Shown: positions 717 to 51,386, counted from the stretch's first letter. The stretch is 64,000 bases of DNA from Hydrolagus colliei (GCA_035084275.1 CM068762.1:3348001-3412000); one strand, 5' to 3'. The notes: a model not told the origin generated them from the letters alone. Numbers and translations: made by a program.

Positions 717-837
717 GGAAAGAGGGATGAACACGTTTCTGTTCCGCCCTCACTGCGGTGAGGCAGGAGCCGTGACCCATCTCCTGACGGCCTTCATGAC
801 CGCGGACAACATCTCGCATGGACTCAATCTGAAAAAG
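717..837 (+). CDS. AMPD1: AMP deaminase 1, internal coding exon ([18 protein letters not shown]...HGLNLKK)
   Basis: tttcag acceptor, AAG|gtcagt donor; translation matches the AMPD HCGEAG catalytic motif; MNTFLF and GLNLKK are AMPD1-like. Confidence 0.93.
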
Positions 838-1085
838 GTCAGTGTGGAGAGGGGGGGGGGGGGGGGGGTGGCCTTGCTGACGCCTGCAGCGTTCAGAGAT
901 CAGCGCGGCGAAGTGATCGGTATGAAAATAAACAGTTACAGGGGACGGTTACAGTCAGACTCTTGCCGGCTGCTTGGGGTTTTCCTCCTGGTATTGCTGG
1001 TGATGACTCAATCAAAGTGCCACCTTGGTTACCCATTTAAAGTGACTCCAATTCCAGTTTCACTTAAAGGCACGTTGGCACGTTG

Positions 1086-1310
1086 TGTCAGCCTGCCTCA
1101 GGGGTAGCGCTTTTACATCTTGAGTCGGAAACTTGTGTGTCTAAGCCTCACGTCAGGACTTGGAATCACATTGACTATGGTGATGCTCCAGTGCAGCGCT
1201 GTCAGAAGTGCCTGCCGTCCTTTGGGTGAGATGTTAAACCGAGCTCCCCGCCTGCCTGTTCAGGTGGATGTGAAAGATTTCGTAGCACTCTTTGGAAAGT
1301 GAAGGGAGCC
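1086..1310 (+). mobile_element. Older DeuSINE (SacSINE1/AmnSINE-like) fragment
   Basis: GTGCC-GTCCTTTGGGTGAGATGTTAAACCGAG...CAGGTGGATGTGAAAGAT resembles the 5' Deu domain; similar fragments near 31560-31760, 45150-45430, 50050-50340, 53270-53540 and 55990-56240. Confidence 0.65.
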
Positions 1311-2337
1311 TCTCACGAGATGTTTCTCTTTCGCACTGAATTGAGGAAAAACTTCTTCACTTAGAGGGTAATGAATTTATGGAATTCTCTACCCCAAAGG
1401 GCTACAGGCCTTGAACATATTCAAGACTGAGATTGATAGATTTCTTGTGGAAAAAAGGATCAAGGGATATGGGGATAAGGCCGGTAGATGGAGTTATATT
1501 AGAAGATCAGCCATGATCTTATTGAATGGCAGGGCAGGCTCGAGGGGGTGAATGGCCTACTCCTGCTCCTAATTCTTATGTTCTTATGTCTGGTATGACT
1601 CTTTTCAAATCAATGCCCCCATTTGCTTCCTGATTCTCTTACACATTTTGATATTCTGCTGCACAAAAGGGGCTTCATTTCAAATAAGAGTTAAATGTCT
1701 TTTGATCTGTTGTTCCCCCAAATGCCTCATTTGGTCGAGTGCTGTCTATATGTTGTCTATATTGAGTGCTGTCTTTACGGTTCAGTGCCTAGTTACCTAT
1801 TGAGATAGTGGAGTTGGCCTCAGTATCCCTCTGTTGGGGAGAGGGAAAGTCTGTCAAGTTCCTCCTGCTGTGGACAACCTGTTGGAGTCTGGAACTGTGT
1901 GGAATTTGTACACGGACTGGATCGGGTTTAAACACGCCCACTCCCAATGACTGATGCCAGCCAACACTTATTGACCAGGCTCACAGGTTTCAAAATGGTC
2001 ACTGGTGGGGAAGTGAAGGAAAAGAGCCATTTTTACCATGTGTCCTCTTTTCTCTTACTTCTCTTAACTTGCACTGATATAGTATCTTGTGCAAGGTGGC
2101 ATCCCCGAGCCCTTCAATGCAGAGCTATCAGGATAAGAGTGAAAGTTGGAGGGGTGGAAAGTCTAAATCTCATTTTAGAGCACCGGGTCTCCATGATACA
2201 ACACTGTCTGTTTAGTAGTTAGCAAGGCTGGGGTTTGATAAACAGATGTGGTGGTGACCTACTTAGATGGAACATTTTAAGTTAAAAGTTTTGTGGTTAG
2301 AGCACTCGCCTTGCAAGCGAGAGCACCTGGTTTTGAT

Positions 2338-2643
2338 ATAATAATACTTGCAATTGATGTAACGCTGTTCACGTATCTTAGACGTCTCAAAGCGCGTCAC
2401 AGAATATACTGTAAAGTGAATTAACTGTATATTTGTGGGCAAATCGCGGCAGCCAAATACGCACAGCAGTGTCCCACAAACAGTCATGGATTGAAATGAC
2501 AAATTCATTACAGTTTTTTTGTGTTTGAGGGATTATTAGGTGTGCGGAGTAAGAAACTTACCCAACGTTTTGCCCTGACCTTCCTGGATTCGAACACAGG
2601 TCTCATGCTTGTAAAGCAAGTGCTCTAACCACTGAGCTACAGC
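2338..2643 (-). mobile_element. tRNA/Deu SINE
   Basis: Reverse complement of the family consensus. Confidence 0.8.
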
Positions 2644-2887
2644 TTTCTAATATACTGTAAAGTGGATTGACTGTGTATTTTGTGGGTGAGCGGGGGATAC
2701 CACTTCGCCAGGCTGATGCACACATATGTTTTCGGGGTTGTGATTCTACTTGTGTGATGTGTGGTTGGTTGGGTTACCTGTGAAGCGCTTTGAGTTGTCT
2801 CAAAGACATGATAAGACGCTCAATCAAATGCAAGGATTATTATTGTTAATATTAAGGCTGATCAAGTTGATCTGTGACCCCCCCCAG

Positions 2888-3061
2888 AGCCCAGTCCTGC
2901 AGTACCTGTACTTCCTGACCCAGATCCCCATCGCCATGTCTCCCCTCAGCAACAACAGCCTATTCCTGGAGTATGCCAAGAACCCACTGCTGGAGTACAT
3001 GCAGAAAGGGCTGATGGTCTCACTCTCCACCGATGATCCCATGCAGTTCCATTACACCAAG
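2888..3061 (+). CDS. AMPD1: AMP deaminase 1, internal coding exon (SPVLQYL...[14 protein letters not shown])
   Basis: cccag acceptor, AAG|gtaagt donor; 174 nt, phase 0-0; contains the SLSTDDP signature. Confidence 0.95.
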
Positions 3062-3890
3062 GTAAGTGAGGGTCTCGGGCTGGGCACCAGGACTCATTGA
3101 TGTCCTTTGGTCACCACTGCAGCTACTGGCATGGGCGGAGATTTACGTCCTGAAGAATTGAGTATAAAAGTAGGGAGGTAATGTTACATTTAAATAAAAC
3201 TACATTTGCACAGTTCTGGTCACTACATTACACAAAGGATAGTAATTTTATTATTAAAGGGAGTTTAAGTGGACCTTCTTCACGCAGAGGTTGATGAGTG
3301 TGTGTCACACTCTGTGATAAAAGCAAATAGCACCCATAATAATAATTCTTATTATAATATAATTATAAATATAAAATATATAATCATAAAAATGATTATT
3401 ATTAGGAGTGTGGAGTAAGGACAGTTGCTGAAGGTTTTACCTTTCCTCGAATTGAACCGAGATCTTTCGCTTATAAAGCGAGTGCTCTAACCACTGAGCT
3501 ACAGTTTAATTGCCAAAATTGTACATCCACCTGAGTCCCATCAGTTTCCTATCAAAATCACTTTGGTTTAATGGGAGGGTGGCCTAAGGCGCGGTCGAAG
3601 AGGAAGGTCTTTAGATGTTACTTGAACGTATTCAATGTGGTTAAGAGGAAAACATGATTTGTGCGTGAGCGGGAAGGGAAGAGAGGGGGATAGCAGAGGG
3701 GAATATGAGGGTTGTTTAGTTGCGGGCATGATTGCATTAGCGCAGACTAGTTTCCAAGCCGCATCACTCGACGTAACTCTATCTAATTCTATGTTTTGTG
3801 CTGAGCTAGTAGGTTAGTGCTATTGCTAGAGCTGATATCTCTGAGATCTTGGGATTTGCAACAGGAACCAACACCAACAAGCGACGGACT

Positions 3891-4065
3891 GAAATAGAAA
3901 CAGAAGTCACTGGGAACACTCAGCAGCTCAGGCAGCAGAACTCTGATGAAAAGTCATTGACCTGAAACGTTGACTCACTTTCCTCTCTCCATAGATGCTG
4001 CCTGACCGGCTGAGTGTTCCCAGCGACTTCTGTTTATATTTCAGATTTCCAGCCCCTGCAGGGTT
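3891..4065. mobile_element. Penelope-like terminal fragment forming a 47-bp inverted repeat around a hammerhead-like core
   Basis: Arms 3891-3937 and 3996-4042; the loop contains CTGATGA...GAAACGTT. Confidence 0.65.
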
Positions 4066-4133
4066 GTGCCTTTTGTTAAATGACTGATCTCAGAGTGGAT
4101 CGACAATGGTGACTGTGTGTTGTCTGTTGGCAG

Positions 4134-4244
4134 GAACCCCTGATGGAGGAGTACGCCATCGCAGCCCAGGTCTTCAAGCTGAGCACCTGTGACATGTGTG
4201 AGATCGCCCGAAACAGCGTCCTGCAGAGCGGCTTCTCTGAGCAG
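4134..4244 (+). CDS. AMPD1: AMP deaminase 1, penultimate coding exon ([37 protein letters not shown])
   Basis: ggcag acceptor, CAG|gtacct donor; 111 nt, phase 0-0; [12 protein letters not shown] is AMPD1-type. Confidence 0.95.
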
Positions 4245-5446
4245 GTACCTCCTGTCAGCCCTACATCACAGTCAGCCCTACATTATACAGATAGCTCTAC
4301 ACAACAACAACAACAACAAAATTACATTTATAGAATATACATTATATCACATCAGGAGGCGCTGAACAGTCAGGTTGGGAACCGACCAAGGGAGAGGGGA
4401 AGGGTAGTGGGGAGGGATGGGAGAAATATGGAGGGGAGGGAAAGAGTTGGGAGGGCAGCAGAAGGCACAATCGAAGCGGAAGATCTTCAGACCGGCCTTG
4501 AAGGAGGTGAGGGAGGGAGCGAGGTGAAGGGACTGTGGGATTGAGTTCCAGAGTGTGGGAGCAGAGAGGCTGAAACAAAGGTAGGGCAGGTTGGGTGGGG
4601 ACATGGAGCAGACAGGAGCCCGCTGAATGGAGGGGCGGGCAGGTTCATAGGGGAACAACATATCAGAGAGATAGGAGGGGGCAAAGCCTTGAAAGTGAGG
4701 ACGAGGATCTTGAATTCGATTCTCGAGGATGGGGAGCCAATGGATCCTGGCGAGGGTGGGAGTGATGTGGTTGCGGAGCTTGGTACAGTCAGCCCTACAC
4801 TACATAGTCATTTCTACACTCCTTCCCCATCCTCAGGTCGAGCCTGAAGACCTTTCTCTTCGAACGCACTTATGGTCACTTTCCACCTCCCCCTGGCTGC
4901 CATTGTTCTGAGACGCTGGCGGGCGTGGAGGGCGCTATATAAATTCAAGTTGTTGTTGTTGCTACCCTACATGGTGTAAACTACACGACATATTCAGTCC
5001 TCCAAGACATACCTCCTCGTGTTATGCAGTCAATCATAGTCAGGGAGGGAGAGGCTGCTTTTAGAAGGATAACTGTTTCTATATTAAAGAAACTAAAATA
5101 TTCCTGAAGGATTCCAACCGGAGAGTTTTGAAGTTAAACCATCTCAATCGCATCTTTGTAGATTCGAACTTGCCATATACTGCGCATATAACCCAGTCCC
5201 CAAGCCTTGGCTGTTGCCTAATGCTGCGCCTAACACCCTCTGGAATTAGGTAAACAGGAAGCCTCCCTCCAGGGAGAGAGAGAGTGCGCATTCCACTCCA
5301 ACAATGTATCTCTGGGATTTCCATGTGTAGGTGGGAGACGTGGAATTCTCATCTTGGTTTGGATACTCTTAAGCATGGTGATGGGTTTCCACATGTGTCA
5401 AGACACCTGGCTGAGCAAAACAAACAAAGGACGGCACATCCTTTGT

Positions 5447-5775
5447 GGAGCTCCTGTAGCTCAGTGGTTAGAGCACTTGCCTTACAAGCCAGAGATCTGG
5501 GTTCAACTCCAGGCATGTCTGGGCGAAACCTTGGGCAAGTTTCCTTACTCCACATACCTGATAATAATTCCTCAAAATAAAACAGTGATAGATTGGTCAT
5601 TTCAATCCACGACTTTTTTGTGTGGGACACTGCTGTGCGCAATTGGCTGCTGCGTTTCGCCCACGTGTGTGTATATATATACAATCAATTAACTTTACAG
5701 TATGTTCTGTGAAGCGCTTTGAGATATCTAAAAAACGCTATATCAAATGCAAGGATTATTATTATTATTATTATC
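5447..5775 (+). mobile_element. tRNA-derived SINE with partial Deu domain and L2-like tail (dominant family, dozens of copies)
   Basis: A/B-box head GGAGCTCCTGTAGCTCAGTGGTTAGAGC...GGTTCAACTCC, core GTGGGACACTGCTGTGCGCAATTGGCTGC, (TTA)n tail. Confidence 0.88.
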
Positions 5776-6004
5776 ATCCAACAATGGGAGGCTCCCCCCA
5801 GCACTGCTGGAGCCATTACCTGCCTTTGTTGATCATATTTTCTCTGTAATTATTCTCTGTGTAGCTGCTAACCCCTCTGTGCCGATCCTCAGTACCAGCT
5901 CTAATATAGTGTGTCCTGGTTTCCTAATTCACCTCGCGACCTGACCTGTCTGTCCCATCTCCTGGTGTCTCTTTAAACTCTATCCCTTCACTCTTGCCTG
6001 ACAG

Positions 6005-6163
6005 GAGAAGAGCGATTTCCTGGGACCTAACTACCGTAAGGAGGGCCCCGAAGGTAATGAGATTCGGAAGACAAACGTGTCCCAGATCCGGATGGCTTAC
6101 CGCTATGAAACCCTCTGCTATGAACTGAACCTGATCTTGGAAGGCATTCGCGGCTCAGAGTAA
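6005..6163 (+). CDS. AMPD1: AMP deaminase 1, terminal coding exon ([10 protein letters not shown]...[14 protein letters not shown])
   Basis: Hand-translated (too short for the ORF track); gacag acceptor, TAA at 6161-6163; the C-terminus resembles AMPD1 YELNLIAEGLKSTE. Confidence 0.93.
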
Positions 6164-6340
6164 CAGCGTGAGAGTTGGCGCTTCACATTCCATCCGCGGG
6201 CTGGAATCTGTGGGATTAAGAGTCGATTGCCTGCCATTATTGAATAACACTGGAAAATCATACAATCTCCCAGTATTATTTGTTCCTAGAAACTCCAGCT
6301 TTGGTAGCTCCAGGTATACTGGGACCTAACACCCAACAGT

Positions 6341-6668
6341 GGAGCTCCTGTAGCTCAGTGGTTAGAGCACTCACCTCACAAGCGTGAGACCTGTGTTCAA
6401 ATCCAGGCAGGTCAGGGCGAAACCTTGGGCAAGTTTCCTTAGTCCACACACATGCCTAATAATAATCCGTCCCAAGAAAACCAAACACTATTGTAAAATT
6501 GGTCTTTGCAATCCACGACTGCTTGTGGGACACTGCTGTGTGTAATTGGCTGCTGTGTTTCGCCCACAAATATACAGTCAATTCACTTCACATTATATTC
6601 TGTGAAGCGCTTTGAGACGTTGATAAGATGTGAAAAACGCTATATCAAATGCAAAGATTATTATTATA
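6341..6668 (+). mobile_element. tRNA/Deu SINE, full length
   Basis: Same head, core and tail as the 5447 copy. Confidence 0.88.
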
Positions 6669-7538
6669 ACACACAATCAGACACCTGAGCGTAAGAATTG
6701 TTTGGTGAAGAAGAACTAGGTCCACCCAGTTCACCTCCCACCATTCTGGCAGTCGCATGCATGTTGTAAACTATATTCTGATATCCGTATATATTACTTT
6801 CTAGCAGAAAGCTATCTAATTTGTTCTTAAAAGCATCCACACTTTCTGCTTCCAACGTCTCCTAAGAAAGTGTTCCATATTTTAACACTCGCTCGCTCAC
6901 TGAAGTAGTGTTTCTGCAGATTTTTCTGAAAATAGCCTTCACCCCCTCCCTCCTACTTCCATCGCAGACCTTATCCTCAAGTTCTACTATTCAGTATAAG
7001 GTAAAACAGCTTGTTTAGACACTTAAAGACACATAATCATATCGTCCCTCAACCTTATAAGACCTGACAAACCTTCACATCTCGCTCTGCAGGGAGCTCT
7101 CTACCTTGAGCACTAGCATGAATTCTCACAGCACCTGAAGGTTCTATGTACTAGGGATATAACTGAGGTATTTCTCCTTCCACCTTCCCCACTGTCCCCC
7201 CGCCTCCCTCCACCCCCCCACCCCACCCCCACCTCCGGTGTGTTCTGTTTACGCAACCACTGATGGAAGTAAAGTAACAAGCTCAAGTTGTGTTTGTTTC
7301 ATTTTGTAAAAGTTTGACATAAGCACTACATAACCACTGTTTGTCGTGAGCTGCCTCTGGACAATTCGCTGCAATTTATATATCCACCTTAAACTCTGTA
7401 GGAGTCTGTCTTCAACAAGTGGCCGTGTCTCTGAGTTCGACGACCCTTTAAAAGTCAACTCAGGGAACCTAACCATTAGAAGAATATGGAACATACTGCC
7501 ATCCGAAAGCTTAGATACAGACGAGAGAGAGAGCTGTA

Positions 7539-7908
7539 CAGGTAGACCCCGCTTAACACAGTCCCACTTAACATCTTTTTGTTTTTACGCTGCTGATACA
7601 TTGGGAACATATATTCATTTAACGTTGCAACGTTCTCTATTACATTGTTGGCGCGGGTGGAAAGGGGGCACGATGAAGCTAGGACCTGGGAGTGAGCCAG
7701 GCCGGCAGCGAGTGAGTGAGCCGGGCAGGCAGTTAGGGAGTGCATATTATGGGTTTTTTAAAAGAAAATTTAGATGAAAAATATCCAAAAGAACCTAACT
7801 CCAGTTTTTACATTAATTCTTATGGGAAAAATGTATTCACTTAACGTCGTTTCGCTTAAAGTCGCACTTTTCAAGAACCAAACTACGACGTTCAGCAGGG
7901 GATACCTG
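7539..7908. mobile_element. TcMar/Tigger-like MITE (second family)
   Basis: TA-CAGGTAGACCCCGCTTAAC ... GGGGATACCTG-TA. Confidence 0.78.
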
Positions 7909-9389
7909 TACTTCGGAATTAAAGACCAGGAGGAAAGGTAGGGAAACGGGAAAAAAATGCCATGAAGCAACTGAGCAGGTTTGATGGGCTGAGTGTCCTA
8001 CCCTGACATCGGCAGAATCCTGTGGCTTGGTTGGTTGGAGCCCTCGCCTCGCAAGCGAGAGGACCCAGGTTTGATTCTTGAGCAGGGCAAAACATTGGAC
8101 ACGTTTCCTTACTCCACCTGCCTACTACTCCACCTGCCTATTTATCTCTCAGGAAGTAGGAACCCAGTTGTTCCTGGGATTAATAATCCCTTAAAAATAT
8201 ATTAATTTCATCGTTCAATCCATGACCTTTGTGGGACACTGATGTGCTCAATTGGCTGCCGCATTTCGCTCATATAGACAATTCACTTTACAGTATACTC
8301 TGTGAAGCGCTTTGAGACGTCCGGAGAATGTGATGACACTATATCGCAAGCAAGGAATATTATTATCCGTGTTTGTGATAATACACTAATATTTGTCCAG
8401 TTTGAGCAGGGGTTTGAGAATGGACTCTGAAGTCACCCAGGAGTGAAGCGTTGAATTTTTTCAACATGGATTTTTCAGTACTCCGTTGTGTTTTGGCTAC
8501 TTCAGTGCCTTGGGATGTCCTCCTGATGTGAAAGGCCCTGTACAAATGTAATTTTGTTGTATTTTGTGGTTACTTCCTGCCTCTGCCCCTCTCTCCCTCA
8601 AACACACACGCACATTGCTCATACACCACATTGGTTAGGCCTCTCCGTTTCTGTAAAGTTACTCTCCTACATAAAGAATAATAATAATAATCCATGTGTT
8701 CGAAATGGTAATAACAGCTATGAAGTGAATAACCAATTTTAATCTATGGGATTGTTGGCCAGGACACTGGGAGAGGGAAACTCCTTTCTCTTTTCCAGTA
8801 ACGCCACAGTATCTGTGATGTCCACCTGAACAGAGAGAAATGAGACCACAACAACAAATTACATTTACATGGCGCCTTTCGCATCAGGAGGACAAGAAAC
8901 GTGCTGCGCGGGCAAATCATACACGATCATCTCAAAATGTGGCTGGTGCTTACGGAGGGAGAAAGGTCCCAAGTTCCATTCCTGATCAACACCGAATCAG
9001 TTGGGTTGACCACGACAACTCTACCACTTATTGGTCAGGCTACAGAATACAGTTCTGGTTCCTGTATCAGGGCAACGCAGAGTTGGGCTGATCCCCAGTG
9101 TCAAAGGAATGAGCTACGAGCGGTTAGACAACCTAGGACTCTTCAGGCTTGAGAGAAGATGTCTCAGAAGGGACCTTTTAGAGGTTTATACCATTTTGAT
9201 TGGGGTTAAATACGGAAAGTTGAGGAACAAAAGGACAGACACCAGGAAGTTTTTCTTTACCCGGTGAGTACTTATTGACCGGAACAGGGTTTCCAGGAAA
9301 GGTGGGAAAGGCCAGGACATGGGAGCGAATGAAAATGATGAGATACAATGTATCACAGATACACAGAGCGTATCAGAGCACTTAAAGTC

Positions 9390-9680: not shown

Positions 9681-9966
9681 ATCCTCGCGTTTGATACGGT
9701 GCCTTATCGATGTCTCAAAAACGCCAACCCACCCTGCAGCTTACCCCCACCCCCCCCACCCCCCCCCCACCCCCCCCACCATCCAGAAGGTTCCTCCCAG
9801 CAAACGTCACTACCTCTTTCCCCAGAGAGAACCTGCTCTATGGCCTTCAGCTCCCCTCCCTCCCCAACCCCAACCTGCCTCTGCCATCTCCACAGCCGGC
9901 CCTTGCTTCACGACCACACCCTCCCCCTCTAACCACCATCGCCATTTTGCCCCCGCTCTCTGGACC

Positions 9967-11415
9967 NNNNNNNNNNNNNNNNNNNNNNNNNNNNNNNNNN
10001 NNNNNNNNNNNNNNNNNNNNNNNNNNNNNNNNNNNNNNNNNNNNNNNNNNNNNNNNNNNNNNNNNNNNNNNNNNNNNNNNNNNNNNNNNNNNNNNNNNNN
10101 NNNNNNNNNNNNNNNNNNNNNNNNNNNNNNNNNNNNNNNNNNNNNNNNNNNNNNNNNNNNNNNNNNNNNNNNNNNNNNNNTCTTTACCTCTTTCAACACA
10201 TGTCAACATCTAACTGTTTGACCGCACTTTACCCCTCCCTCTGGTCTTTGAGACATCTCCAAGAACTTCTTAGAATACACTGTTAAGTCTCTTGTCTGTG
10301 TTTTTGTGGGCAGAACGCGGCAACCCATTGTGCACAGCAGTGTCCCACAATCAGTCGTGAAGCGAGTGACCAAATTCTTCTTGTATTATTATTACACACA
10401 CACTCTTTCTCTGTCACTCCCCCCTCATTCAACAACAACTTTGTTTTATACAGCGTCCGGGCGGCGTCTCAGAGCAGATAATAGCAGACAATAGCAGATC
10501 CCGGGACCCGAGCCAGGGGCGGGGGGAGAGAGGTGACCAAAGGCGCGGTCAAAGAGAAAGGTCTTCAGCTGTGACATGAAACTGGAAGAGAGGGGGCGAA
10601 GGGAGTGAGGAAGGGAGTTCCAGAGCCTCGAGCCTAGTGGCTGAAGGCACGGCCGCCAAGGGTGGAGCGGAGGATTCGGGGGGACATGGAGGAGGCCAGA
10701 CCCAGAGGAGCGGAGGCAGTGGGTGCTGGGTTGGTGGGTTGGGGGGAGAGGAGATTAGAGAGATACGGGGGGGGGGGGGGCAGAGGAGTGGAGGGATTGA
10801 AAACAAGGGTANNNNNNNNNNNNNNNNNNNNNNNNNNNNNNNNNNNNNNNNNNNNNNNNNNNNNNNNNNNNNNNNNNNNNNNNNNNNNNNNNNNNNNNNN
10901 NNNNNNNNNNNNNNNNNNNNNNNNNNNNNNNNNNNNNNNNNNNNNNNNNNNNNNNNNNNNNNNNNNNNNNNNNNNNNNNNNNNNNNNNNNNNNNNNNNNN
11001 NNNNNNNNNNNTCCCACCCCCCTCCCCCTCCCCCGACTTCCCTCCCTCCCTGGTTCCCTCTCTATGCCCCCCCCCCCCCCGCCCCCCCTTACTACTTTGG
11101 CTTCCCAGCGCCTTGGGACGTCCTCCCGACATGAAAAGTGCTCTACACATCAAATTTGTTATTGTTACTCCCCCCCCCCCCCCCGTCACCTCTCCCCATC
11201 TCTCCCTGCTCCACTTTCCTGCTCTCCCCCCCCCCCCCCACCCCCCACCTCTCCTCCACCTTCTTCCTTCTCTCTCCACCCTTTCNNNNNNNNNNNNNNN
11301 NNNNNNNNNNNNNNNNNNNNNNNNNNNNNNNNNNNNNNNNNNNNNNNNNNNNNNNNNNNNNNNNNNNNNNNNNNNNNNNNNNNNNNNNNNNNNNNNNNNN
11401 NNNNNNNNNNNNNNN
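9967..11415. other. Three assembly gaps (9967-10180, 10812-11011, 11286-11415) flanked by poly-C/G
   Basis: N runs. Confidence 0.99.
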
Positions 11416-12569: not shown

Positions 12570-15126
12570 GCAAGTACAACAAGGTTTCTGTAAGTGAGCA
12601 CCTAGGAAATAGCGATCACAATATAATTAGGTTCAGTATAATTGTGGAAAGGGATAAGCAACATTCAAAGGTGAAGACACTCAACTGGAAGAAGGCTAAT
12701 TTCAGTGAGTTAAAGCGGGACCAAGCCGAGGTGGACAAGAAAGAACGATTGGCAGGTAAAACAGCTAATGAGCAGTGAGCAGTCTTCAAGGAAGAGATAG
12801 TTTGGGCACAGGTCAAAAACATTCCAACAAAGATAAAATGTAGGGCATCCAAACCTCCTTGGATGACTAGGGCAATTGGGGTTAAAATAAAGCAAAAAAA
12901 GGAGGCTTATGACAAGCATCAGGCCCACGATACAGAGGTCAACCAAGCCGAATATAGGAAGTGTAGGAGAGAACTGAAAAGGAAATTAGTGGGGCAAAAA
13001 GACTGCATGAGAAACAATTAGCAGGTAACATTAAAGGGAACCCTAAGGTATTTTACAAACATATTAAGAGTAAAAGATTGGTCAAGGGTAGGGTGGGGCC
13101 AATTAGGAGCCAAGGAGGAAATCTTATTGTGGAGGCAGAGGGCATGGCTGATGAGTTCTTTGCCTCTGTCTTCACAAGAGAAGAAGATGCAGCCAATGCT
13201 ACAGGTATTGGAGGAGAGGGTAGAAGAAATGGGTAAGATAAGCATAACCAGAGAGGAAATACTAAAAAGGTTGACGGCGCTCAAGGTAGATAAGTCACCC
13301 GGTCCGGATGGGATGCATCCTAGGTTACTAAGGGAAGTACGGGAGCAAATAGCAGAGACTCTGGCCACAATCTTTCAATCTTCCTTGGACACAGGGTTGG
13401 TACCAGAGGACTGGAGGGTTGCTAATGTTACTCCCCTGTATAAAAAGCGGCTGTTTTTCAGACTGGGGGGAAGTGTACACTGGCGTTCCCCAGGGATCGG
13501 TTTTGGGACCACTGCTCTTTTTAATATACAGGTATCCCGCTCCAACCACGAAACGCACAACCACGGTTTGCTAAATGCGACAACCCTCACAAACTGCGTT
13601 TTGTTCATTCTCGATTTGCATCCGCGGTTTAAATTTTCAAGTTTCACTCCTCCAAACAAGGGACCGCATTCATCCACATATTGGTGTATATTCATCCGTG
13701 TTTCCTGCCTATCAGCATCTTTACTACACCACGTGGTCTAGCTGTACTCATGAAATACAGGGTCTGTAAGTCAGTCAGACAGCCCCCCAGCCCTCCAATA
13801 TCATCCCCCCCCCCTTACCCTCCGTGTCTCTCTCTCTCTATTTCTGTGTAAGTCAGTCACCCCGCCCAGCCCTCTGTGTCATCCCCCCCCACCCTCCGTG
13901 TCTCTCTATCTCTGTGTAAGTCAGTCAGACAACCCCCCCAGTCCTCCGTGTCACCCCCCACCCTCCATGTCTCTCTCTCTGTGTAGAGAGTCAGTCAGTC
14001 AGACAGCCTCACGGATTGCTATGTTATAACTGTACATTTTTTTTGTGTTCAGTTTTACAAAACGCAAACTTACTCCTCGTATCCCCATGTTTGCCATAGG
14101 GCCCTGCATTTCCCAACTATGATTTTACCAGCCATGAAGGTTTACAGGAATGTATCCCTCCCGGTTGGGGAGGAATACCTACATATTAATGATCTGGACT
14201 TGGGTGTAGGGAGCACAGTTTCCAAGTTTGCAGATGATACCAAGTTAAGGAGAATAGTAAATAGTGAGGAGGATAGTAACCATCTGCAAGAAGATGTGGA
14301 TAAAATGGTAAATTGGGCAGACACATGGCAGATGAAGTTTAATGCAGAGAAATGTGAGGTGATACATTTTGGGAGAAGAAATGAGGGGAGGCAATATAGG
14401 CTAGATAGTACAATTTTAAGGGGTGTGAGGGAACAGAGAGACCTGGGGATTTGGGTTAGTGACTCTTTGAAGGTGGCAGGACAGGTTAAGAAGGCATATA
14501 GGATACTAGGCTTTATAAATAGGGGTATAAGAGTACAAAAGTCAGGAAGTGCTGACTAACCTCTATAAAACTGTGGTGAGGCCTCAGCTGCAGTTCTGTG
14601 TCCAATTCTGGTCACCACACTATAGAAAGGATGTTAAGGCATTGGAAAGGGTGCAAAGAAGGTTTACCAGAATGGTACCAGGATTGAGGGACTTCAGTTA
14701 TGGGGAAATGCTAGATAGGCTAGGTTTATTCTCTTTGGAACAGAGAGGTTGAGAGGAGATCTAATAGAGGTTTATAAAATCATGAGGGGATTCGACAGGG
14801 TGAATAAGGAAAAACTGTTTCCACTGGTGGACGAATCTTGACTTGTGGTCACAGATATAAAATAGTTTCAAAACGAAGCAGAGCGGAGCCGAGGAGAAAT
14901 TTTTTCACTCAGCAGGTTTTTCGAATCTGGAATGCATTGCCTGAAAAGGTGGTGGAGGCCGATTTGATAACAGCTTTTAAAAGAGAATTTATTTAGGGAG
15001 AACAGTTCTGTTAGGTTATGGGGAGAGAGCTGGGCAGTGGGATTGAGTTGCTCTATTCAAAGAGCCAGCACAGACTAGATGAGTCGAACGGCCTCCTTTT
15101 GTGCCGTACAATTCTATGATTCTATG
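12570..15126 (+). mobile_element. Degraded CR1 LINE with an internal deletion, interrupted by a MITE
   Basis: HLGNSDHN, KSPGPDG, FADDTK and LERVQRR motifs; ends in TTCTATGATTCTATG. Confidence 0.88.
13529..14181. mobile_element. TcMar/Tigger-like MITE inserted in the CR1 RT
   Basis: Imperfect TIRs CAGGTATCCCGCTCCAACC / GGTTGGGGAGGAATACCT; splits the CR1 LIYIND codons at a TA. Confidence 0.8.
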
Positions 15127-15687
15127 TATCCCAGCGCTTTGGGACGTCCTCCCGACGTGAAAGGCGCTATATAGTGCAATTTTGTTGTACTGTATTGTAT
15201 GTGTATAGTGTGTGCATACTGTATTATGTGTGTATAGTGTGTGTATGTATATATATACTGTATTGTGTGTGTAGTGTGTGCATACTGTACTGTGTGTATA
15301 CTATATTGTGTGCGTGTGTGTGTGTGTTATGAACACACCCACCCCTATGAACCTGCAAATCCCCTCCGTTCAGCGGGCTCTGGTCTGCTCCATGTCTCCC
15401 GCCTGACCCGCCCTACCACCGGTGGATGGGCTTTCAGCCTCTCTGCCCCCACACTCTGGAACTCTAGCCCACAGTCCCTTCACCTCACTCCCTCCCTTGC
15501 CTCCTTCAAGGCCGGTCTCAAGACCCTCCTCTTCGATCGTGCCTTTTGCTGCCCTCCCATCTCTCCCCCTCCCCACTAACCTGCTCCTCCCCCTTGCTCG
15601 AGTCCTGACCTAACAGTTCAGCGCCTTGGGACGTCCTCCCAATGTGAAAGGTGGTCTATAAATGTAATATTGTTGTTGTTGTTACAG

Positions 15688-15951
15688 AGCACTCACTGCG
15701 GTATTACTACACGGCAGTGTCTGCCAGCAATGGGTCTGGGTTGCCCGTCTTCTCCCATGTGGGGATGTTGGACGATGTACAGATCACTCGCTATGACAGT
15801 GAGAGGCCCACCAACCAGCCTATGCAGCCGTGGATGCAGGCGGCTCTGTCGGCAGAAGAGTGGGAGAGCGAGTCCGTCAAACTGGGCGAGAGACAGAAAC
15901 TCTACCTGGCCAACGTCAAGATTGCCATGAAACGCAGTAGCATCACCACAG
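15688..15951 (+). CDS. MHC class I-like heavy chain, alpha1 exon
   Basis: HSLRYYYTAVS, GMLDDVQITRYDSE and PWM...EEWESE motifs; 264 nt, phase 1-1; ttacag acceptor, G|gtcagt donor. Confidence 0.92.
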
Positions 15952-16675
15952 GTCAGTCTCTCGCTCACCCCCAGCCCGGCCTCAGGTCACCCTCCCCAAC
16001 ACCAGGGCGCTTCATCACTGGAATTTATGGTTGTTGTCTGTGTGTCAGCCAGGATCAGTGGTGACCCTGTCTCTTGCTCAGCGCGTGTCGGCAGCACTAT
16101 TACGTCCAGCAATTGTCCCACCGACAGCCATGGAGTCAGTGACCCCATTTTTAATTATTTGGGGGATTGTTGGCCAGGAACCTGTGAGAGAGAAATTCCC
16201 TTCCCTTTTCAAATAGTGCCACAGGATCTTTAGCGTCCACCTGAACAGGCAGACGGCACCTTGTTTAATGTCTCATCTGGAGGACAGCAACAAGGACAAT
16301 TCACCGCCCTCCCCCCCCACCCCCACCCCACCCCAACGCAGTCTCTCTGTCACTCACTCACCATTGGTGGGCAAGCCTTCAGCCCCCACCCTCTGGAACT
16401 CCTTCCCACAATCGCTCCACCTGGCCCCCATCCCTTGCCTCCTTTAAAATCTCCCATCTCAAGACCCTCCCTCTTCGTCCGTGCCTCTGATCACCCTCCT
16501 TCCCCCCAAACCCCACCCCCCCCACTTCCCTCCACCCACCCTCCCAGCTCGGGTCCAAAACACTGACTGTCCAGCGCCTTGGGACGTCTTCCGAAAGCGA
16601 AAGGAGATTTACAAATGTAATTTTGTTGTTGTTGTTGTTGTTGTGACACTGTGTATCTCTGGTTCCTGGGGTCAG

Positions 16676-16951
16676 GGCTGAATGTGCTCCAGTACATGTC
16701 GGGCTGTGAGCTGCGTAAGGACAACAAGGTGCATGGCATCCGCACTTACGCCTTCAATTTCCGTGACCTGCTGTCCTTCGACATGGAGACCCTGCAGTGG
16801 GTGGCGGCCTCGCCCATCGCCAAACCCACCAAAGAGAAGTGGGATCGCAACGTGCCAGAGAACAAGTACAAGAAGACGTACAGCGAGATCATCTGTGTGG
16901 AATGGTTACACAAATACCTGAAGCTCAAAGAGAAGGCGCTGCAGAATTCAG
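16676..16951 (+). CDS. MHC class I-like heavy chain, alpha2 exon
   Basis: QYMSGC...TKEKWD...Y...CVEWLHKYL with the C101/C164 pair; 276 nt, phase 1-1; gtcag acceptor, G|gtaaca donor. Confidence 0.93.
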
Positions 16952-17657
16952 GTAACAACAAAGTACATTTGTACAGGGGCTTTCATGTCTGGAGGAGGTT
17001 CCCAAGGCGCTGGACAGTCAGGGATATGGCCCCAAGCTCAGGGTTGGGATCAGGAAACATAGAGCACAAGGAGGGTGGGGGTAGGAGGGTGACCCAAGGC
17101 ATGGTCGAAGAGAAAGTCCTTGAGATGCGCTTTGAAGGAGGCACGGAAGGGAGCAAGGTAAAGGCACCATGGGAATGGAGTTCCAACATCTGGGGCAGAG
17201 AGGCTGATGGTGGGGAGGGCAGGGGTCAAGCAACAGGCCGGAGCAGACGTGTTGATATGGAGTTAGCAGGTCACGAGGTAGGGAGGAGCAAGGCCATGGA
17301 GGGCTTTGAAGGCGAGGATGAGGATTTCGAATTCACCACACAGCATGGATAATAATCCATCTCCCCCACCCTCTATTTGTTTGGGGTGAGGGTACTCAGC
17401 CGGACGTGTGACACATGCGGAAACCCATCACCATGCTTAAGAGTGTTGTCAGCAGTGCCCATGGAGAATGGTGGACCCGCCTGGCTCATGGCCTGACCTG
17501 GAGACCAGCGCACTCCAGTATTGTGTTGCCATATTCACCTGGGAGCCAATTCAGCTCCAAGGAATCCCTGCTTAACTCCCCCCTCTTCCCCGCAGATAAT
17601 CTTGCGCCCCTACACCCCCATCTGTCTTGACCTTTGCCCCCTCTCGTCCCCCCGCAG

Positions 17658-17927
17658 TGGAGCCCGAGGTGACGGTACGAGCCTCCGCGATGGGTTTCGG
17701 CCGCCGCCTGTCGTGTCTGGTGACGGGGCTGAACTCGCGGGATGTGGAGTTGACTTGGAGCCGCAGTGGGGAGGCCGTGCCCGAGACCACGAGGAGCGGC
17801 TTCCTCCCCAACCACGACGGCACCTACCAGATCACCAGCTACCACCACGTCAACCACCTCCGCCCCGAGCACACCTACACCTGCCACGTTCAACACAGCA
17901 GCTTTCCAGAGCAGAAAACCGTCTGGG
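17658..17927 (+). CDS. MHC class I-like heavy chain, alpha3 (Ig C1-set) exon
   Basis: LSCLVTG...LTW...LPNHDGTYQ...YTCHVQHSS; 270 nt, phase 1-1; ccgcag acceptor, G|gtaaga donor. Confidence 0.93.
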
Positions 17928-18089
17928 GTAAGAGAGACTTTGTGTGTGTGTGTGTGAGGGTGGGGGGGCGGAAAGTGACTGTGTGTTGGAGATGCTGAGT
18001 GTGTGGGGCGACTGTGTGGGGGGGGGTTGTGTGTGCGTGTGTGGGGAGTATGTGTAGGGGGCACAGTGTGTGGGTATGTGGGTGGGGAG

Positions 18090-18345
18090 TAGGGTCCGTC
18101 GATATGGAAATTTTCCGATATCAATATATCGGTTGGCTCATATCGATCTATACCGATATATCGATATCTCTGGGGTTTTTTGAACTGCGCATGCGCGCGT
18201 ATTTGGGGTGCGAGCGCATTCCTGTATACGCACGCATTTGGATGTGCTCTAGGCCCAGGAGGTTTGCAATGCCGGCGACAAGGTAAGTTGAAAAAGTTCA
18301 CTTTATACCGATATAACCGATATATCTATATATCGCCGGACACTA
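18090..18345. mobile_element. hAT-type MITE in the class I alpha3-TM intron
   Basis: TIRs TAGGGTCCGTCGATAT / ATATCGCCGGACACTA; perfect 8-bp TSD GTGGGGAG; subterminal CGATAT repeats. Confidence 0.85.
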
Positions 18346-18729
18346 GTGGGGAGGTAGTGTGTGTGTGTGGAGTAGTCAATGTGCATGGGTTGGGACACTG
18401 AGTGTCACTGAGTGTGTCTCTGCACTGTGTGTGCTGCTGGGGGGCGGTTGGCAGTTGCTGTGTGTATGGGTGGAGGCAGTCGTGTGTGTGTGTGTGTGTG
18501 TGGGGGGGGGGCGGGGATGCTAGTTGCTGTGTGTGTGTGTGTATGTGTGGTTGGGGGGAGTTTGGCAGTTGTGTGTGTGTGGAGGGGGCAGATGCTAGTT
18601 GCTGTGTGTGTGTGCGTGCGTGCGTGCGTGCGTGGTTGGGGATTTTTGGCGGTCGTATGTGAGTGGGGGGGTGGGATGCTAGTTGCTGTGTGTATGGAAT
18701 GCGAATCATGTTGCTGTGTTTGATCTCAG

Positions 18730-18855
18730 TGGGTGAAGAGATACCCTGGATACCCTGGTTGATCACTGGGTGTGTGCTCTCGGTTTGCATCATTGCCTCT
18801 GTCGTCACCATTGTGTTGTGGAAAATGAGAGACAGGATTAAATTATGGAAATCAG
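18730..18855 (+). CDS. MHC class I-like heavy chain, connecting peptide/transmembrane exon (VGEEIPWIPWLITGCVLSVCIIASVVTIVLWKMRDRIKLWKS)
   Basis: Hydrophobic stretch followed by a basic stop-transfer segment; 126 nt, phase 1-1; ctcag acceptor, G|gtcagt donor. Confidence 0.85.
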
Positions 18856-19071
18856 GTCAGTGAGACTCGACTCTCCTCCCCCCCTCACACACACACCGCC
18901 TCTCCACACACGCACCCAAAAATACACACGCAAAAAACACCCTGCGCACGCACGCACATAACACACATTAACAGCACACCCAAAGACACAGCACATGCAC
19001 TCATACGCACAGATATGCACACATTGTGTGTCGCTGTGTTACTCACACTGTCTCTGTTTATTTTCTTTCAG

Positions 19072-19101
19072 GTTCAGAACAAAGTGCTTCAACATCAGGA
19101 G
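19072..19101 (+). CDS. MHC class I-like cytoplasmic micro-exon (GSEQSASTSG)
   Basis: Strong ttttctttcag acceptor and G|gtgagt donor; 30 nt, phase 1-1; Ser-rich like class I tails. Confidence 0.75.
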
Positions 19102-19343
19102 GTGAGTTTGTGAGAGAGGGCGTGTGTGAGTGAGAGAGTTTGTGTGAGCGAGACAATGTCTGGAATAGGGAGAATATGAGAGGGAAAAGATTATGAGAGA
19201 AGGAGTGTGTGATAGAGTGTGTGTGTATATATGTATGTATATTTGTATGAGAGAGGCAGTGTGTGTTTGTATTTTTGCGTGTGAGAGAGGGAGAATGCGT
19301 GTGTGTATATATATACACACACATATATAAAATATATATACAC

Positions 19344-19855
19344 TAGGTACCCCTCCCCAACCTCGGGGGATACGTTCCTGAACACCTCCGCGGTTAGTAA
19401 ACCCACGGTTGGAAAATACAGGGCCCTATGGGAAACATGGGAATAGGGGGAGTAAGTTTGAGGGCATTGACTGCCAGAATCTGCAGCAATCCGCGAGGCT
19501 GTCTGACTGACTGACTGATCTACACACAGACACACAGAGAGAGAGAAATCAACGGAGAAGGTGGTGTGTTGGGTGACATGGAGGGGGGGTGGATGTGGAG
19601 AAGGCGGTGTGGGTGACACAGAGGGTGGGGGGGGATGCAGAGAAGCGATAATAAATTTACGTTTTTTACCTTAATCCTAAGAGAGAAGCGACATCGTCGC
19701 TGGTTGATTGCGACATCGCAACTGGCTAGTGTTAGTGTTAAAACCCGTGGATACGCAAAACCCATTGCCGTGGTTAGCGAGGGCTGTCACAGCGAGCCGA
19801 CCGTGGATACGTGACATTAGCGGCAGAAAAACCCACGGTTGGGGCGGGGCACCTG
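19344..19855. mobile_element. TcMar/Tigger-like MITE, same family as 13529-14181, opposite orientation
   Basis: TIRs AGGTACCCCTCCCCAACC / GGTTGGGGCGGGGCACCTG-TA; internal similarity to the reverse complement of 14040-14180. Confidence 0.8.
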
Positions 19856-21171
19856 TATATAAACTTGGATGACCAAGAGCTTATTTTTCAGCTGCCCTAT
19901 TAGCTAAAAAAATGTAATAATTGCTCTAAGACTTCTTATATATTAGGATAGTATGTGAGAGAGGGACAGTGTAGTAGAGAGTATGTGTGTGTGTTATTAT
20001 TTCTATAAATTTATATATATATATAAAGTATAATAATCCTTACATTTGATACAGCGCCTTATCACGTATTTGAGACATCTTAAAGCACTTCACAGAATAT
20101 ACTGTCTATTTTGTGGGCGAATGAATACGTGAGAGAGAGGAAGGGTGTGACATATATATATGTGAGGTTTATATAGCGTGTGGGGGAACGCAGCGGACTG
20201 AATACAGCACAGCTCAGAGAGGTTATTACTCTAACTACTTCCTGGAAGGTTTTTTTTGTATCAGGGACGACACTAAACACCTGCCCCCAACAGCAGCAAA
20301 CGTTGTTTGAGCCCCAGGACTGTTGACATAAGTCAGGCTGAGACTCTGGGTATGAGACGATTGCTCTGGGTGATGATGCTCAGTGCCTCGGGGACGAAGG
20401 GGGACACGGCAGGCGATCTGTGTCGCGCTGACAGACGTCAGTGGGGAGTCAGGCGGGACAGGGAAGTTTCTGTGGGCGGGAACCAGCTCTTGTGGTCCCC
20501 AGATTCAAGAGAGATGACAAAACCCCTCCTGGCAACAACAACAAAATTACATTTATAGAGCGCCTTTCACGCCCCAAGGCTCTGAACATTTATGTCGGGA
20601 CCCGAGCAGGGGTGGGGCGGGGGGGGTTGGGGAAGGAGAGTAGGAGATGGGGAAGAGTTGGGAGGGGAGCAGAAGACGTGGCCGAAGAGGAAGGTCTTGA
20701 AGGAGGAAAGGGAGGAAGTGAAGCGAAGGGATTGTGGGTTGAGTTTCACAGTGTGGGAGCAGAGAGGCTGAAAGCCCGGCCAACAACGAGAGTGGCCATT
20801 AACCTGAGCTCAACAATAGGGGAAGTCAAGAAATCATCAGAAAGGAAATGGGAGATTACCCACATCACAATAATCTGATGATTAACTCTCTCTCTCTCAC
20901 CCACTCCATCTCGCTCTCTTATTCCGATACACACACCCACTCTCACAATCTCTTACTCTTGGACACACACTCACTCTCACATATACTCACTCTCACGCTC
21001 GCATACACTCTTTCTCATACATATTCTCTCACTCTTCACACACACACACACACACACACACACTAATTCTCTTTCACACTCATTCCCTTTCTCACTGTCA
21101 CTCTCTCACACTTTCACACACACACGCGCACACGTACACACTCACACACTCTCTCTCTCTCTCTCCCACAG

Positions 21172-21218
21172 GCTCAGAGGAAAGTCTCCGAGTGAAGGGC
21201 CCCGAAGCTCAAATTTTG
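21172..21218 (+). CDS. Probable terminal cytoplasmic exon of the class I-like gene (GSEESLRVKGPKLKF*)
   Basis: (ct)n-cccacag acceptor, phase 1 open to TGA; followed by AT-rich UTR-like sequence with ATTAAA at 21808-21813. Confidence 0.55.
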
Positions 21219-21289
21219 ATACCTGGTTCTGATACCTCCTCAACTTCCAGCCCCCCCACCAGCCTGTGTCAAGTATAACCTCTCCCAGC

Positions 21290-21405
21290 TCGCTCTCCCC
21301 CAGCCCCCTCTCCCCAGCCACCTCTCCCCCAGCCTCCTCTCCCCCAGCCCCCTCTCCCCAGCCCGCTCTCCCCCAGCCCCCTCTCCCCAGCCCCCTCTCC
21401 CCCCC
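21290..21405. repeat. C-rich tandem repeat (CTCTCCCCCAGCCCC) in the class I-like 3' region
   Basis: About 7 degenerate 15-16 bp units. Confidence 0.75.
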
Positions 21406-35820: not shown

Positions 35821-37417
35821 TTGCCTCGATCCCATCCCCACTAACCTACTGCTCACCCAACTCCCCCTCCTCTGCCCACTGTTGGTTGATATCATCAACC
35901 AGTCCCTCTCCTCCGGATCAGTCCCTGCCCCCCTCAAAACTGCCGTCATCACCCCCCTCCTTAAAAACCCTCCCTAGATCCCTCAAACCGCCCTAGCTCA
36001 AAACAGCCCTTCCTCTCAAAAGCACTGGAACGCGTTGTTGCAAACCAACTCCGCACCCACCTCTCCTCCCACTCCCTCTTCAAACCCCTCCAGTCCGGTT
36101 TCCGCCCTGCCCACAGTACAGAGACTGCGCTTGTGAAAGTCACAAACGACGTCCTCTCTATCTGTGACCAGGGTTCCCTCTGCCTCCTTCTCCTGCTGGA
36201 CCTGTCGACTGCCTTTGACACAGTCGACCATGCCATCCTCCTCCACCGCCTGTCCTCCGCCATCCACCTCAGTGGGACCGCACTCGCCTGGTTCGAGTCC
36301 TACCTCACAAACCGCCAGCAGTACATCTCCACAAACGACTTTTCCTCCCACACTCACCCAGTTACCTGTGGGGTACCCCAGGGATCCATCCTTGGCCCCC
36401 TCCTCTTCCTCATCTACACGCTCCCACTTGGGGATGTGATCCGCAGACATGGGGCACACTTCCACATGTATGCGGATGACACCCAAGTCTATCTCTCCAC
36501 TTCACTTTGCGACCCCCAGTCCCCCGATGTTCTGTCAGCCGGCCTTTCAGACATCAGGGGCTGGATGAGCACAAATTTCTTGCAGCTGAATGTTGACAAG
36601 ACAGAGGCCATACTCCTTGGCTCTCATCAACATCTCCATTCCCATGGCTCTCACCTCCTCCACCTTCCCGGCCTGCCCCTAAAACTCTCCGAACCTGTGC
36701 GCAACCTTGGCATCAGGTTCGACCCCCAACTGTCCTTCCTCCCCCACATCCGGTCCCTCACCAGCACTGCCTTCTACCACCTCCGACGGATCGCCCGTCT
36801 CTGGCAATACCTCACCTTAAAAGCCGCTGAAACCTTGGTCCACGCCTTTGTCACCTCTTGGCTGGACTATTGCAACGCCCTCCTCACCGGTCTCCCTTCC
36901 ACCACAATCCACAAAATCCAGCTTATCCAGAACTCTGCCGCCCGCATACTCACCTGCTCTAAGCCTCGCTCCCCCATTACCCCAGTCCTTGCCAGACTTC
37001 ACTGGCTCCCTATCCCAGAGAGGATCGACTTCAAGATCCTCACCCTTGTTTTCAAATCCCTCCACTGCTCTGCACCCCCCTATCTCTCTGATCTCCTCTC
37101 ACCCCAACCCAGCACCCGCTGCCTTCGTTCCTCTGGGTCTGGCCTCCTCCATGTCCCCCGAGTCCTCCGCTCCACCCTCGGCGGCCGTGCCTTTAGCCAC
37201 TACGCCCCGAGGCTCTGGAACTCCCTTCCTCACTCGCTTCGCCTCGCCCCCTCTCTTCCCAGTTTCAGATCACAGTTGAAGACCTTTCTCTTCGACCGAG
37301 CTTTTGGTCACCTTCCTGCCCCTGCCCCTGGCTCGGTCCCGGGACCCGTAACTGTGAAGCGCTGTGAGACGCCTTCTGGCATGGAGTGCGCTATATAAAT
37401 CGAAGTTGTTGTTGTTA
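35821..37417 (+). mobile_element. 5'-truncated young L2 LINE with a 421-aa uninterrupted RT C-terminal ORF
   Basis: PQGSILGP and YADD motifs, stem-loop 3' end, (GTT)n tail; TTGATCAGTGTGT on both flanks. Confidence 0.9.
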
Positions 37418-41427: not shown

Positions 41428-41530
41428 ATGGAGCTCAAGGTCTGGGTGGACGGAATCCAGCGAGTGGTGTGTGGGGTGAATGAGAACACCACCTGTCAGG
41501 AGGTGGTCATCGCTCTGGCACAAGCCATGG
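41428..41530 (+). CDS. RASSF8-like: N-terminal RASSF7/8-type protein, first coding exon ([35 protein letters not shown])
   Basis: Close to the RASSF7/8 RA-domain start; in-frame TGA upstream at 41398; G|gtaagg donor. Confidence 0.92.
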
Positions 41531-51358: not shown

Positions 51359-51386
51359 GTGAGTGAATGCAGACCTGAGTCCTGTA

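Follow-up and report, generated by a model that had tools for sequence, protein, structure and literature searches.

How a solitary class I gene came to lie outside the major histocompatibility complex (MHC) was the question raised by a 64,000-nucleotide stretch of the Hydrolagus colliei genome (GCA_035084275.1 CM068762.1:3348001-3412000), referred to below as the window. The original prediction, made from the sequence alone, set a class I gene between AMPD1 and RASSF/BCAS2 and left two readings side by side, an ancient non-MHC class I lineage or a lineage-specific translocated copy. The gene is identified here as the holocephalan branch of a known chondrichthyan-wide nonclassical (class Ib) lineage, and not as an unnamed lineage of its own. 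Between the two readings, the relocated copy is favoured because elasmobranch members of the lineage are found with other class I genes on the MHC chromosome. The idea of a separate, unnamed lineage was not upheld, as the holocephalan genes join an elasmobranch clade with support of 100/99.

The class I gene is real and spliced, and its RNA support comes from a close relative. Translation of candidate exons between 15.4 and 21.5 kb gave six exons on the plus strand, all of phase 1 and with AG/GT borders (Table 1), that follow the plan of class I heavy chains, namely one exon per domain and then transmembrane (TM) and short cytoplasmic exons. The mature chain comprises 356 residues without stops, matches the Pfam families MHC_I (PF00129, 8.8e-38 over residues 1-174) and C1-set (PF07654, 2.7e-13), and keeps all four domain cysteines (C101, C164, C203, and C259). 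A search of a 5.8-billion-sequence collection returned as the nearest protein P0001 (374 aa, 91% identity), which is encoded by the 374-aa open reading frame (ORF) of a 1328-nt Logan contig, L001, from run SRR6291258. The contig aligned to the window in six blocks with 94-98% nucleotide identity and none between them. These blocks coincide with the six exons, so the contig is a spliced mRNA of a close relative that validates every junction, the one to the distant last exon included. The 3' untranslated region (UTR) reaches at least 21317, as positions 1181-1328 of L001 aligned to 21170-21317 (95%). The predicted run of intact, stop-free exons in phase 1 was borne out for six exons, with the qualification that the leader exon falls outside the readable sequence, and the predicted span of 15688-21218 is exact at its start but ends about 60 nt short of the stop codon.

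The structural predictions agreed with a class I heavy chain. An AlphaFold (AF2) model built with 35 homologues had a mean predicted local distance difference test score (pLDDT) of 89 and showed class I topology, with alpha1-alpha2 predicted as two four-strand-plus-helix units at a pLDDT above 90. The best solved structure by sequence was nurse shark UAA (6LUP, 7e-48). Foldseek matched class I and MR1 chains only, with tied E-values that do not tell class I subfamilies apart, and the PDB and Foldseek scores were near-tied for MR1, shark UAA, and frog and chicken class I.

The window gene is the orthologue of Callorhinchus milii XP_042197998.1 at the same locus. After the close relative, the next proteins were V9KZF7 and XP_042197998.1 of that species, with 63-70% amino acid identity. 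The gene for XP_042197998.1 is located on MU249850.1, 3.3 kb 3' of an AMP_deaminase gene and on the same strand. The two loci are colinear at 70-87% nucleotide identity in exons and non-coding DNA alike, through the 3' part of the AMPD gene (window 535-9335), all three exons of the ectodomain along with adjoining intron sequence, and three downstream blocks (27.2-31.4 kb). This colinearity and divergence are in keeping with a holocephalan other than Callorhinchus. The Callorhinchus RASSF8-like protein XP_042198081.1 has a neighboring EukProt number and comes from a record of equal length (13,258,914 bp), and is thus read as encoded on the same scaffold. Spliced Callorhinchus transcripts are represented by V9K* entries. 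The two orthologues share an exon plan and 41 of 43 groove-lining residues, but they are separated by a synonymous divergence (dS) of 0.3-0.4 (0.29-0.43 among the ectodomain exons), the TM region and tail are divergent, a GFYT motif stands in the Callorhinchus alpha3 domain where the window has GLNS, and the leader exon is visible in Callorhinchus.

Within the span of the window and of the Callorhinchus locus, the class I gene of both holocephalans has a non-MHC neighborhood. The neighbors are AMPD, RASSF8-like, and BCAS2 genes, and the tight linkage to TAP, PSMB8/9, and tapasin seen with classical-type genes is not found there. The only segments conserved with the chimaera or sawfish loci were those of AMPD, class I, RASSF8-like, and BCAS2; TAP, PSMB, and tapasin were not directly searched. 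A second set of class I exons was not detected by tblastn in the 64 kb, in agreement with the prediction of a lone gene. Nor does the window contain a beta2-microglobulin gene.

The affiliation of the gene was established from a HMMER scan that covered 1.84 billion representatives exhaustively and from two IQ-TREE maximum likelihood (ML) trees of 60 and 51 sequences. Outside the 50% cluster of the gene itself, the nearest relatives in the scan were elasmobranch proteins, such as P0005 of Mustelus and P0007 and P0199 of Heptranchias, and the scan contained no relatives closer than these elasmobranch nonclassical proteins. In both trees, the holocephalan sequences were monophyletic (100/100) and sister (100/99) to an elasmobranch nonclassical clade, which is composed of nurse shark QGX07421.1 (annotated as 'nonclassical MHC class I antigen') and its orthologues in Chiloscyllium, Hemiscyllium, Mustelus, and Heptranchias. 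The elasmobranch lineage is referred to below as UDA-type. The union of the two clades was distinct from MR1 and from the chondrichthyan UAA/UBA-type group, which included Triakis UAA, 6LUP, Heterodontus O19480/O19481, Squalus Q8HWH7, and Callorhinchus V9L0X9/V9KZ04. The comparison with described lineages that had been proposed thus brought the gene into one of them, although the literature consulted maps that lineage to the MHC and not to the AMPD1 locus.

The deeper position of the lineage was less firm. The QGX07421.1-type lineage fell outside the U/UAA-type assemblage (95/97 and 99/98), and in one tree it was sister to the Z lineage of ray-finned fish (95/82). However, an approximately unbiased (AU) test did not reject the UDA-type and UAA sequences as one clade (p = 0.088), and the deep placement of the UDA-type lineage is therefore soft. 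Some class I lineages are known to be common to holocephalans and elasmobranchs (Verissimo et al., 2023; PMC10751288, citing Almeida et al., 2020), and Z sequences have not been found in sharks (Grimholt et al., 2015; PMC4364491).

The ligand groove was examined by aligning the sequences to HLA-A2 numbering and comparing 43 groove-lining positions with the 129 other positions of alpha1-alpha2. Identity in the groove was 41/43 against Callorhinchus and 33/43 against nurse shark, compared with 88/129 and 57/129 elsewhere (Fisher p = 2e-4 each). Hence, in these between-species data the groove is the most conserved part of the molecule, the reverse of the classical pattern. No such excess was found against UAA (p = 1) or against Z (p = 0.86), and a groove shared with the Z lineage was rejected, as its 18/43 identical residues are at background level. 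Eight residues anchor the peptide ends in class I molecules, namely Y7, Y59, Y/R84, T143, K146, W147, Y159, and Y171 (Grimholt et al., 2015; PMC4364491). The window gene keeps seven of them (Y7, R84, T143, K146, W147, Y159, and Y171) and so lacks the full classical set, position 59 being a glutamate in all three holocephalan sequences. Conservation far above background in the groove points to a single conserved ligand gripped at both termini, as in monomorphic presenters.

Among known systems, the elasmobranch QGX07421.1 lineage is the nearest to the window gene after the Callorhinchus orthologue. Besides their sister relation, the two have in common a groove signature (L5, Y7, Y9, F22, H24, I33, E63, L67, R70, N77, I80, A81, R84, Y97, S99, R114, Y116, T143, K146, W147, Y159, W167, and Y171) that is conserved well above background. 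They differ in that overall identity is 44-52%, that an N86 glycosylation sequon and, apart from some exceptions, Y59 are retained in the elasmobranch genes, and that those genes have other class I genes around them on the MHC chromosome, in contrast to the solitary window gene beside AMPD1. Classical UAA (6LUP and Triakis O46840) resembles the window gene in its fold, in its layout of domains and exons, and in seven of the eight peptide-end anchors, and provides the best structure match by sequence. In contrast to UAA, the window gene belongs to another clade, has no antigen-processing linkage, carries Y59E, and has a groove that is conserved rather than variable. The Z lineage of ray-finned fish and lungfish is likewise nonclassical, with peptide-end anchors and a groove that has stayed near-invariant over hundreds of millions of years (PMC4364491), and may be the sister clade, but its groove residues are not those of the window gene and the sister relation is not robust. 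MR1 is similar in being monomorphic, class I-like, and encoded outside the MHC, and in its high pairwise scores, but it is related only at the family level; the window gene lacks K43 and has anchors of the peptide type.

Several features of the coding sequence bear on function. Three species with a dS of up to about 0.4 between them all keep the ORF open over 356 codons, free of stops and frameshifts, and this, together with the spliced RNA and the frozen groove, argues for function. The ratio of nonsynonymous to synonymous divergence (dN/dS) against Callorhinchus was 0.44 in both alpha1 and alpha2. The cytoplasmic tail contains an acidic dileucine-type motif, EAQILI (EFDKLM in Callorhinchus), ahead of a terminal part rich in Ser and Thr, and this motif suggests endosomal trafficking or sorting of the predicted protein. 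Additionally, an N-G-S sequon was observed near residue 14 in the window gene alone.

The positions of the elasmobranch genes were compared with those of the holocephalans. In sharks and rays, UDA is reported as a single-copy gene that shares with UEA a class Ib cluster bordering the adaptive MHC, and no class Ib gene was described outside the elasmobranch MHC (Verissimo et al., 2023; PMC10751288). Consistent with this, UDA-type and UAA-type genes were on the same chromosome-size record in four species, namely Mustelus asterias (140,552,254 bp), Chiloscyllium punctatum (81,297,441 bp), Hemiscyllium ocellatum (49,326,738 bp), and Chiloscyllium plagiosum (35,007,441 bp), and this co-occurrence is what is meant here by the same chromosome. 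In those elasmobranchs, the RASSF8-like gene was on records other than that of the UDA-type gene. The UDA-type gene adjoins other class I genes in Heptranchias and likewise in Rhincodon, where the model is a tandem fusion. An alpha1-like relic was also present 8 kb upstream of the UDA-type gene in C. punctatum.

The flanking genes were also located in a ray, the sawfish. Its MHC-Ia gene (P0011) is on CM019888.1 at 17.17-17.20 Mb, with the psmb8 coordinate given for chr34 in Table S1 of PMC10751288 about 85 kb away, while its RASSF8-like and BCAS2 genes are on CM019874.1, which is not the MHC chromosome. At 43 Mb, CM019874.1 is also too short for chr3 (>65 Mb; notch2/pbx1/rxrg). Hence, the AMPD1/BCAS2 block lies neither on the MHC chromosome nor on an MHC-paralogue chromosome listed in PMC10751288 in a ray. 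BCAS2 directly follows RASSF8-like in the sawfish, which makes that part of the synteny chondrichthyan-wide. No class I exons were found within 10 kb upstream of the sawfish RASSF8-like gene or in its introns, a segment that does not extend to AMPD1.

The window gene is read as the holocephalan representative of a nonclassical, monomorphic-type class Ib lineage, and its departure from the MHC probably took place in the holocephalan stem. The whole intron-containing gene would have left the MHC before the split of Callorhinchus and the chimaerids and would have settled between AMPD1 and the RASSF8-like gene, in DNA whose elasmobranch counterpart lies on a chromosome other than that of the MHC. 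The outward direction is preferred by parsimony, because the other chondrichthyan genes of class I and II and beta2-microglobulin are in the MHC and the human interval contains no known class I gene. The relocation appears old because it is common to two holocephalan lineages with a dS of about 0.3-0.4. The predicted product is a heavy chain of the type I membrane kind, which would adopt the usual class I fold and pair with beta2-microglobulin. This heavy chain may hold a single conserved short ligand, most likely a peptide, gripped at its ends through the seven retained anchors, with an N-terminal pocket that would be altered by Y59E. This ligand would be shown to receptors of T or natural killer (NK) cells, the molecule acting as a monomorphic sentinel in the manner of HLA-E/Qa-1 or fish Z and not as a polymorphic classical presenter.

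Four other explanations were weighed against this relocation. The AMPD1-adjacent site could instead be ancestral, such that an old class I lineage was never in the MHC proper and the elasmobranchs later moved a copy into their class Ib cluster, which we consider unlikely. The tree placement outside the U/UAA-type assemblage, and beside Z in one tree, suggests that the lineage arose close to the chondrichthyan-osteichthyan split or earlier, and the MHC paralogous region of chromosome 1 is often taken to include human 1p13. However, the AU test leaves a chondrichthyan-only origin unrejected, the human AMPD1-DENND2C-BCAS2 interval is not known to contain a class I gene, and such a history requires both an insertion into the MHC cluster and a loss elsewhere. 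The sawfish block likewise speaks against it, being off every listed MHC-paralogue chromosome and showing no class I exon in the introns of its RASSF8-like gene or in the 10 kb upstream. Less probable again is the broader proposal that the UDA-type and bony-fish Z genes are one nonclassical lineage predating the chondrichthyan-osteichthyan split, with the holocephalan AMPD1/RASSF8-like site (an NRAS-type paralogon) as its original non-MHC home. Orthology to MR1 in a chromosome 1-type region is implied by the RefSeq pipeline name of Callorhinchus XP_042197998.1, 'major histocompatibility complex class I-related gene protein' (V9KZF7 is named 'MHC class I protein'), and MR1 chains ranked with the best PDB matches by both sequence and fold, but those scores were practically tied with other class I chains. 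In the trees, MR1 fell inside the mammalian class I group (98/90 and 99/92), well away from the holocephalan clade; the Schiff-base lysine K43 of MR1 is an asparagine in the window gene, and where the window gene has T143, K146, Y159, and Y171, MR1 has I, A, W, and F. MR1 orthology was thus rejected by both the trees and the groove residues, and we give it next to no credence. It is just as hard to believe that a class I gene was misjoined to the AMPD1/BCAS2 region during assembly. Three N runs do lie just upstream of the gene, but the independent C. milii assembly GCA_018977255.1 has the same order and orientation, with alignable non-coding blocks inside the gene and to either side, which contradicts the misassembly that the original prediction had allowed for.

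There is also a slight chance that the gene is a decaying or functionless relic, still transcribed but no longer a working antigen presenter. Such decay would fit a number of observations, most of which also weigh against a functional, relocated class Ib gene. The alpha3 domain is near-neutral against Callorhinchus (dN/dS 0.98) and the TM/tail segment reaches 0.79, rising to 1.95 against the close relative, for which the overall value is 0.8 on only 45 differences, too few to interpret. Both the window and the close relative have GLNS in place of GFYP, a motif that is near-universal in the C1-set domain. The window (SSIT) and Callorhinchus (NIN) lack the N86 sequon, which is present in the close relative (NIT), and Y59 has been replaced by E. 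In addition, the leader exon and 5' UTR, represented by the first 216 nt of L001 (leader MLWVLILTCLCLSSVHG), had no match in the readable window by blastn-short or tblastn. On the other hand, 356 codons remain open in three species, splice sites are intact and spliced transcripts exist (the Callorhinchus entries among them), the domain cysteines are all kept, groove identity to Callorhinchus is 41/43 compared with 68% elsewhere, alpha1 and alpha2 are constrained, and the missing leader coincides with N runs. The relocation reading itself faces further reservations. Nurse shark QGX07421.1 is probably a member of the UDA lineage, a putative name that fits the accession date. The direction of the move is a reading by parsimony. 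The Callorhinchus UAA-type proteins were not found on record, and the holocephalan MHC proper may lie elsewhere on the AMPD1 chromosome. Lastly, the ligand, the pairing with beta2-microglobulin, the trafficking, and the receptor are all predictions from sequence.

The absence of the leader exon may be attributed to the N runs. The Callorhinchus leader exon falls between anchors equivalent to window positions 9335 and 15680, and colinearity would put its counterpart at about 10-11.5 kb, among three N runs (Table 1). A scan for interferon-stimulated response elements (ISRE) covered Callorhinchus only, the equivalent stretch of the window being in or near the N runs, and found a single GAAAGTGAAA core. 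This ISRE-like core (TTTCACTTTCAC, with GAAAGTGAAA on the other strand) is at about 9809-9820 of the Callorhinchus sequence L002, about 190 nt 5' of the class I start codon and directly upstream of the stretch that matches the 5' UTR of the close relative. It is weak and lies inside a CT-rich repeat, where it may have arisen by chance.

What is new in these observations is the non-MHC location in holocephalans, a modest but real addition, as the lineage itself and the annotated Callorhinchus orthologue were already known. UDA is reportedly treated by Almeida and colleagues (J Immunol 204:892, 2020) as a class Ib lineage present in both holocephalans and elasmobranchs, with MHC linkage in the title. 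A location beside AMPD1 was not mentioned in the searchable literature, a scope that leaves outside a thesis and two J Immunol papers. The window and the Callorhinchus locus place the one class Ib lineage common to holocephalans and elasmobranchs, in holocephalans, among ordinary housekeeping genes. If the relocation is correct, the escape of class Ib genes from the MHC happened in cartilaginous fish too, as opposed to the all-in-MHC picture drawn for sharks and rays in PMC10751288, and MHC linkage would be unnecessary for keeping a ligand site frozen for more than 400 million years. The gene also offers a single-copy, compact target for learning what an invariant groove binds.

Table 1. Features of the window, with positions counted from its first nucleotide.
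Feature	Position	Strand	Remarks
AMP deaminase gene, 3' part	1-6332	+	ORF 577-1107 matches Pfam AMP_deaminase (2e-18); 535-6332 colinear with the Callorhinchus AMP_deaminase gene
N runs	9967-10180, 10812-11011, 11286-11415	+	Predicted place of the class I leader exon and promoter, by colinearity
Long interspersed nuclear element (LINE) reverse-transcriptase fragments	13127-14559	+	In presumed intron 1; Pfam RVT_1 on ORF 14119-14559, adjoining ORF 13127-13741
Class I alpha1 exon	15688-15951	+	Phase 1; HSLRYYYTAVS...KRSSITT; Pfam MHC_I; 97% nucleotide identity to L001 217-481
Class I alpha2 exon	16676-16951	+	Phase 1; C101 and C164; 98% nucleotide identity to L001
Class I alpha3 exon	17658-17927	+	Phase 1; C1-set Ig domain, C203 and C259; GLNS in place of GFYP
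Connecting peptide, TM, and start of cytoplasmic tail	18730-18855	+	94% nucleotide identity to L001
Small cytoplasmic exon	19072-19101	+	GSEQSASTSG
Last coding exon	21172-21277	+	Ends ...EAQILIPGSDTSSTSSPPTSLCQV; stop codon TAA at 21275-21277
RASSF8-like gene	41428-53713	+	Coding exons 41428-41533, 45914-46780, ~51220-51357, 53603-53713
BCAS2 exon 1	60801-60902	+	Pfam BCAS2; tblastn 79% over residues 1-34; 85% nucleotide identity to sawfish exon 1

The flanking genes named in the original prediction were recovered by Pfam and tblastn. The upstream AMP deaminase gene is putatively AMPD1, a name given by synteny with BCAS2 only. The RASSF8-like exons were located by tblastn with a RASSF8 query and with Callorhinchus XP_042198081.1. 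The large exon corresponds to a 286-aa ORF (45989-46849) with 80% identity to Callorhinchus RASSF8-like, 48-56% to elasmobranch RASSF8-like, and 35-40% to RASSF8b. This paralogue is distinct from RASSF8b and is present in chimaeras, sharks, and rays, with a match in coelacanth as well. RASSF7 lies near HRAS and RASSF8 near KRAS, and the RASSF8-like gene looks like an NRAS-region ohnologue lost in mammals. A second BCAS2 exon considered at 62076-62123 was rejected as a chance match, as it contains an in-frame stop and lies inside a repeat resembling a short interspersed nuclear element (SINE). The sawfish gene has 9 kb between exons 1 and 2, and the true exon 2 of the window gene is probably beyond the window end. 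No exons of DENND2C were seen between AMPD1 and BCAS2, and between 21 and 41 kb, comparison with the sawfish revealed no further coding segment that is conserved.

Repeats were abundant in the window. Besides the fragments in presumed intron 1, LINE reverse-transcriptase ORFs were found at 36133-37398, at 47890-48579, and elsewhere, together with many copies of one or two SINE families. These LINE and SINE repeats are common to Callorhinchus and are the source of most long ORFs in the window. SINE-like copies with a (TTG)n tail, at 15362-15684 and 16374-16640, stop right at the alpha1 and alpha2 acceptor sites. A SINE-like copy is present at the equivalent site 5' of alpha1 in Callorhinchus (window 15362-15682 versus L002 13041-13361, 82%), and the alpha1-side insertion thus appears to predate the divergence of the two holocephalan lineages.

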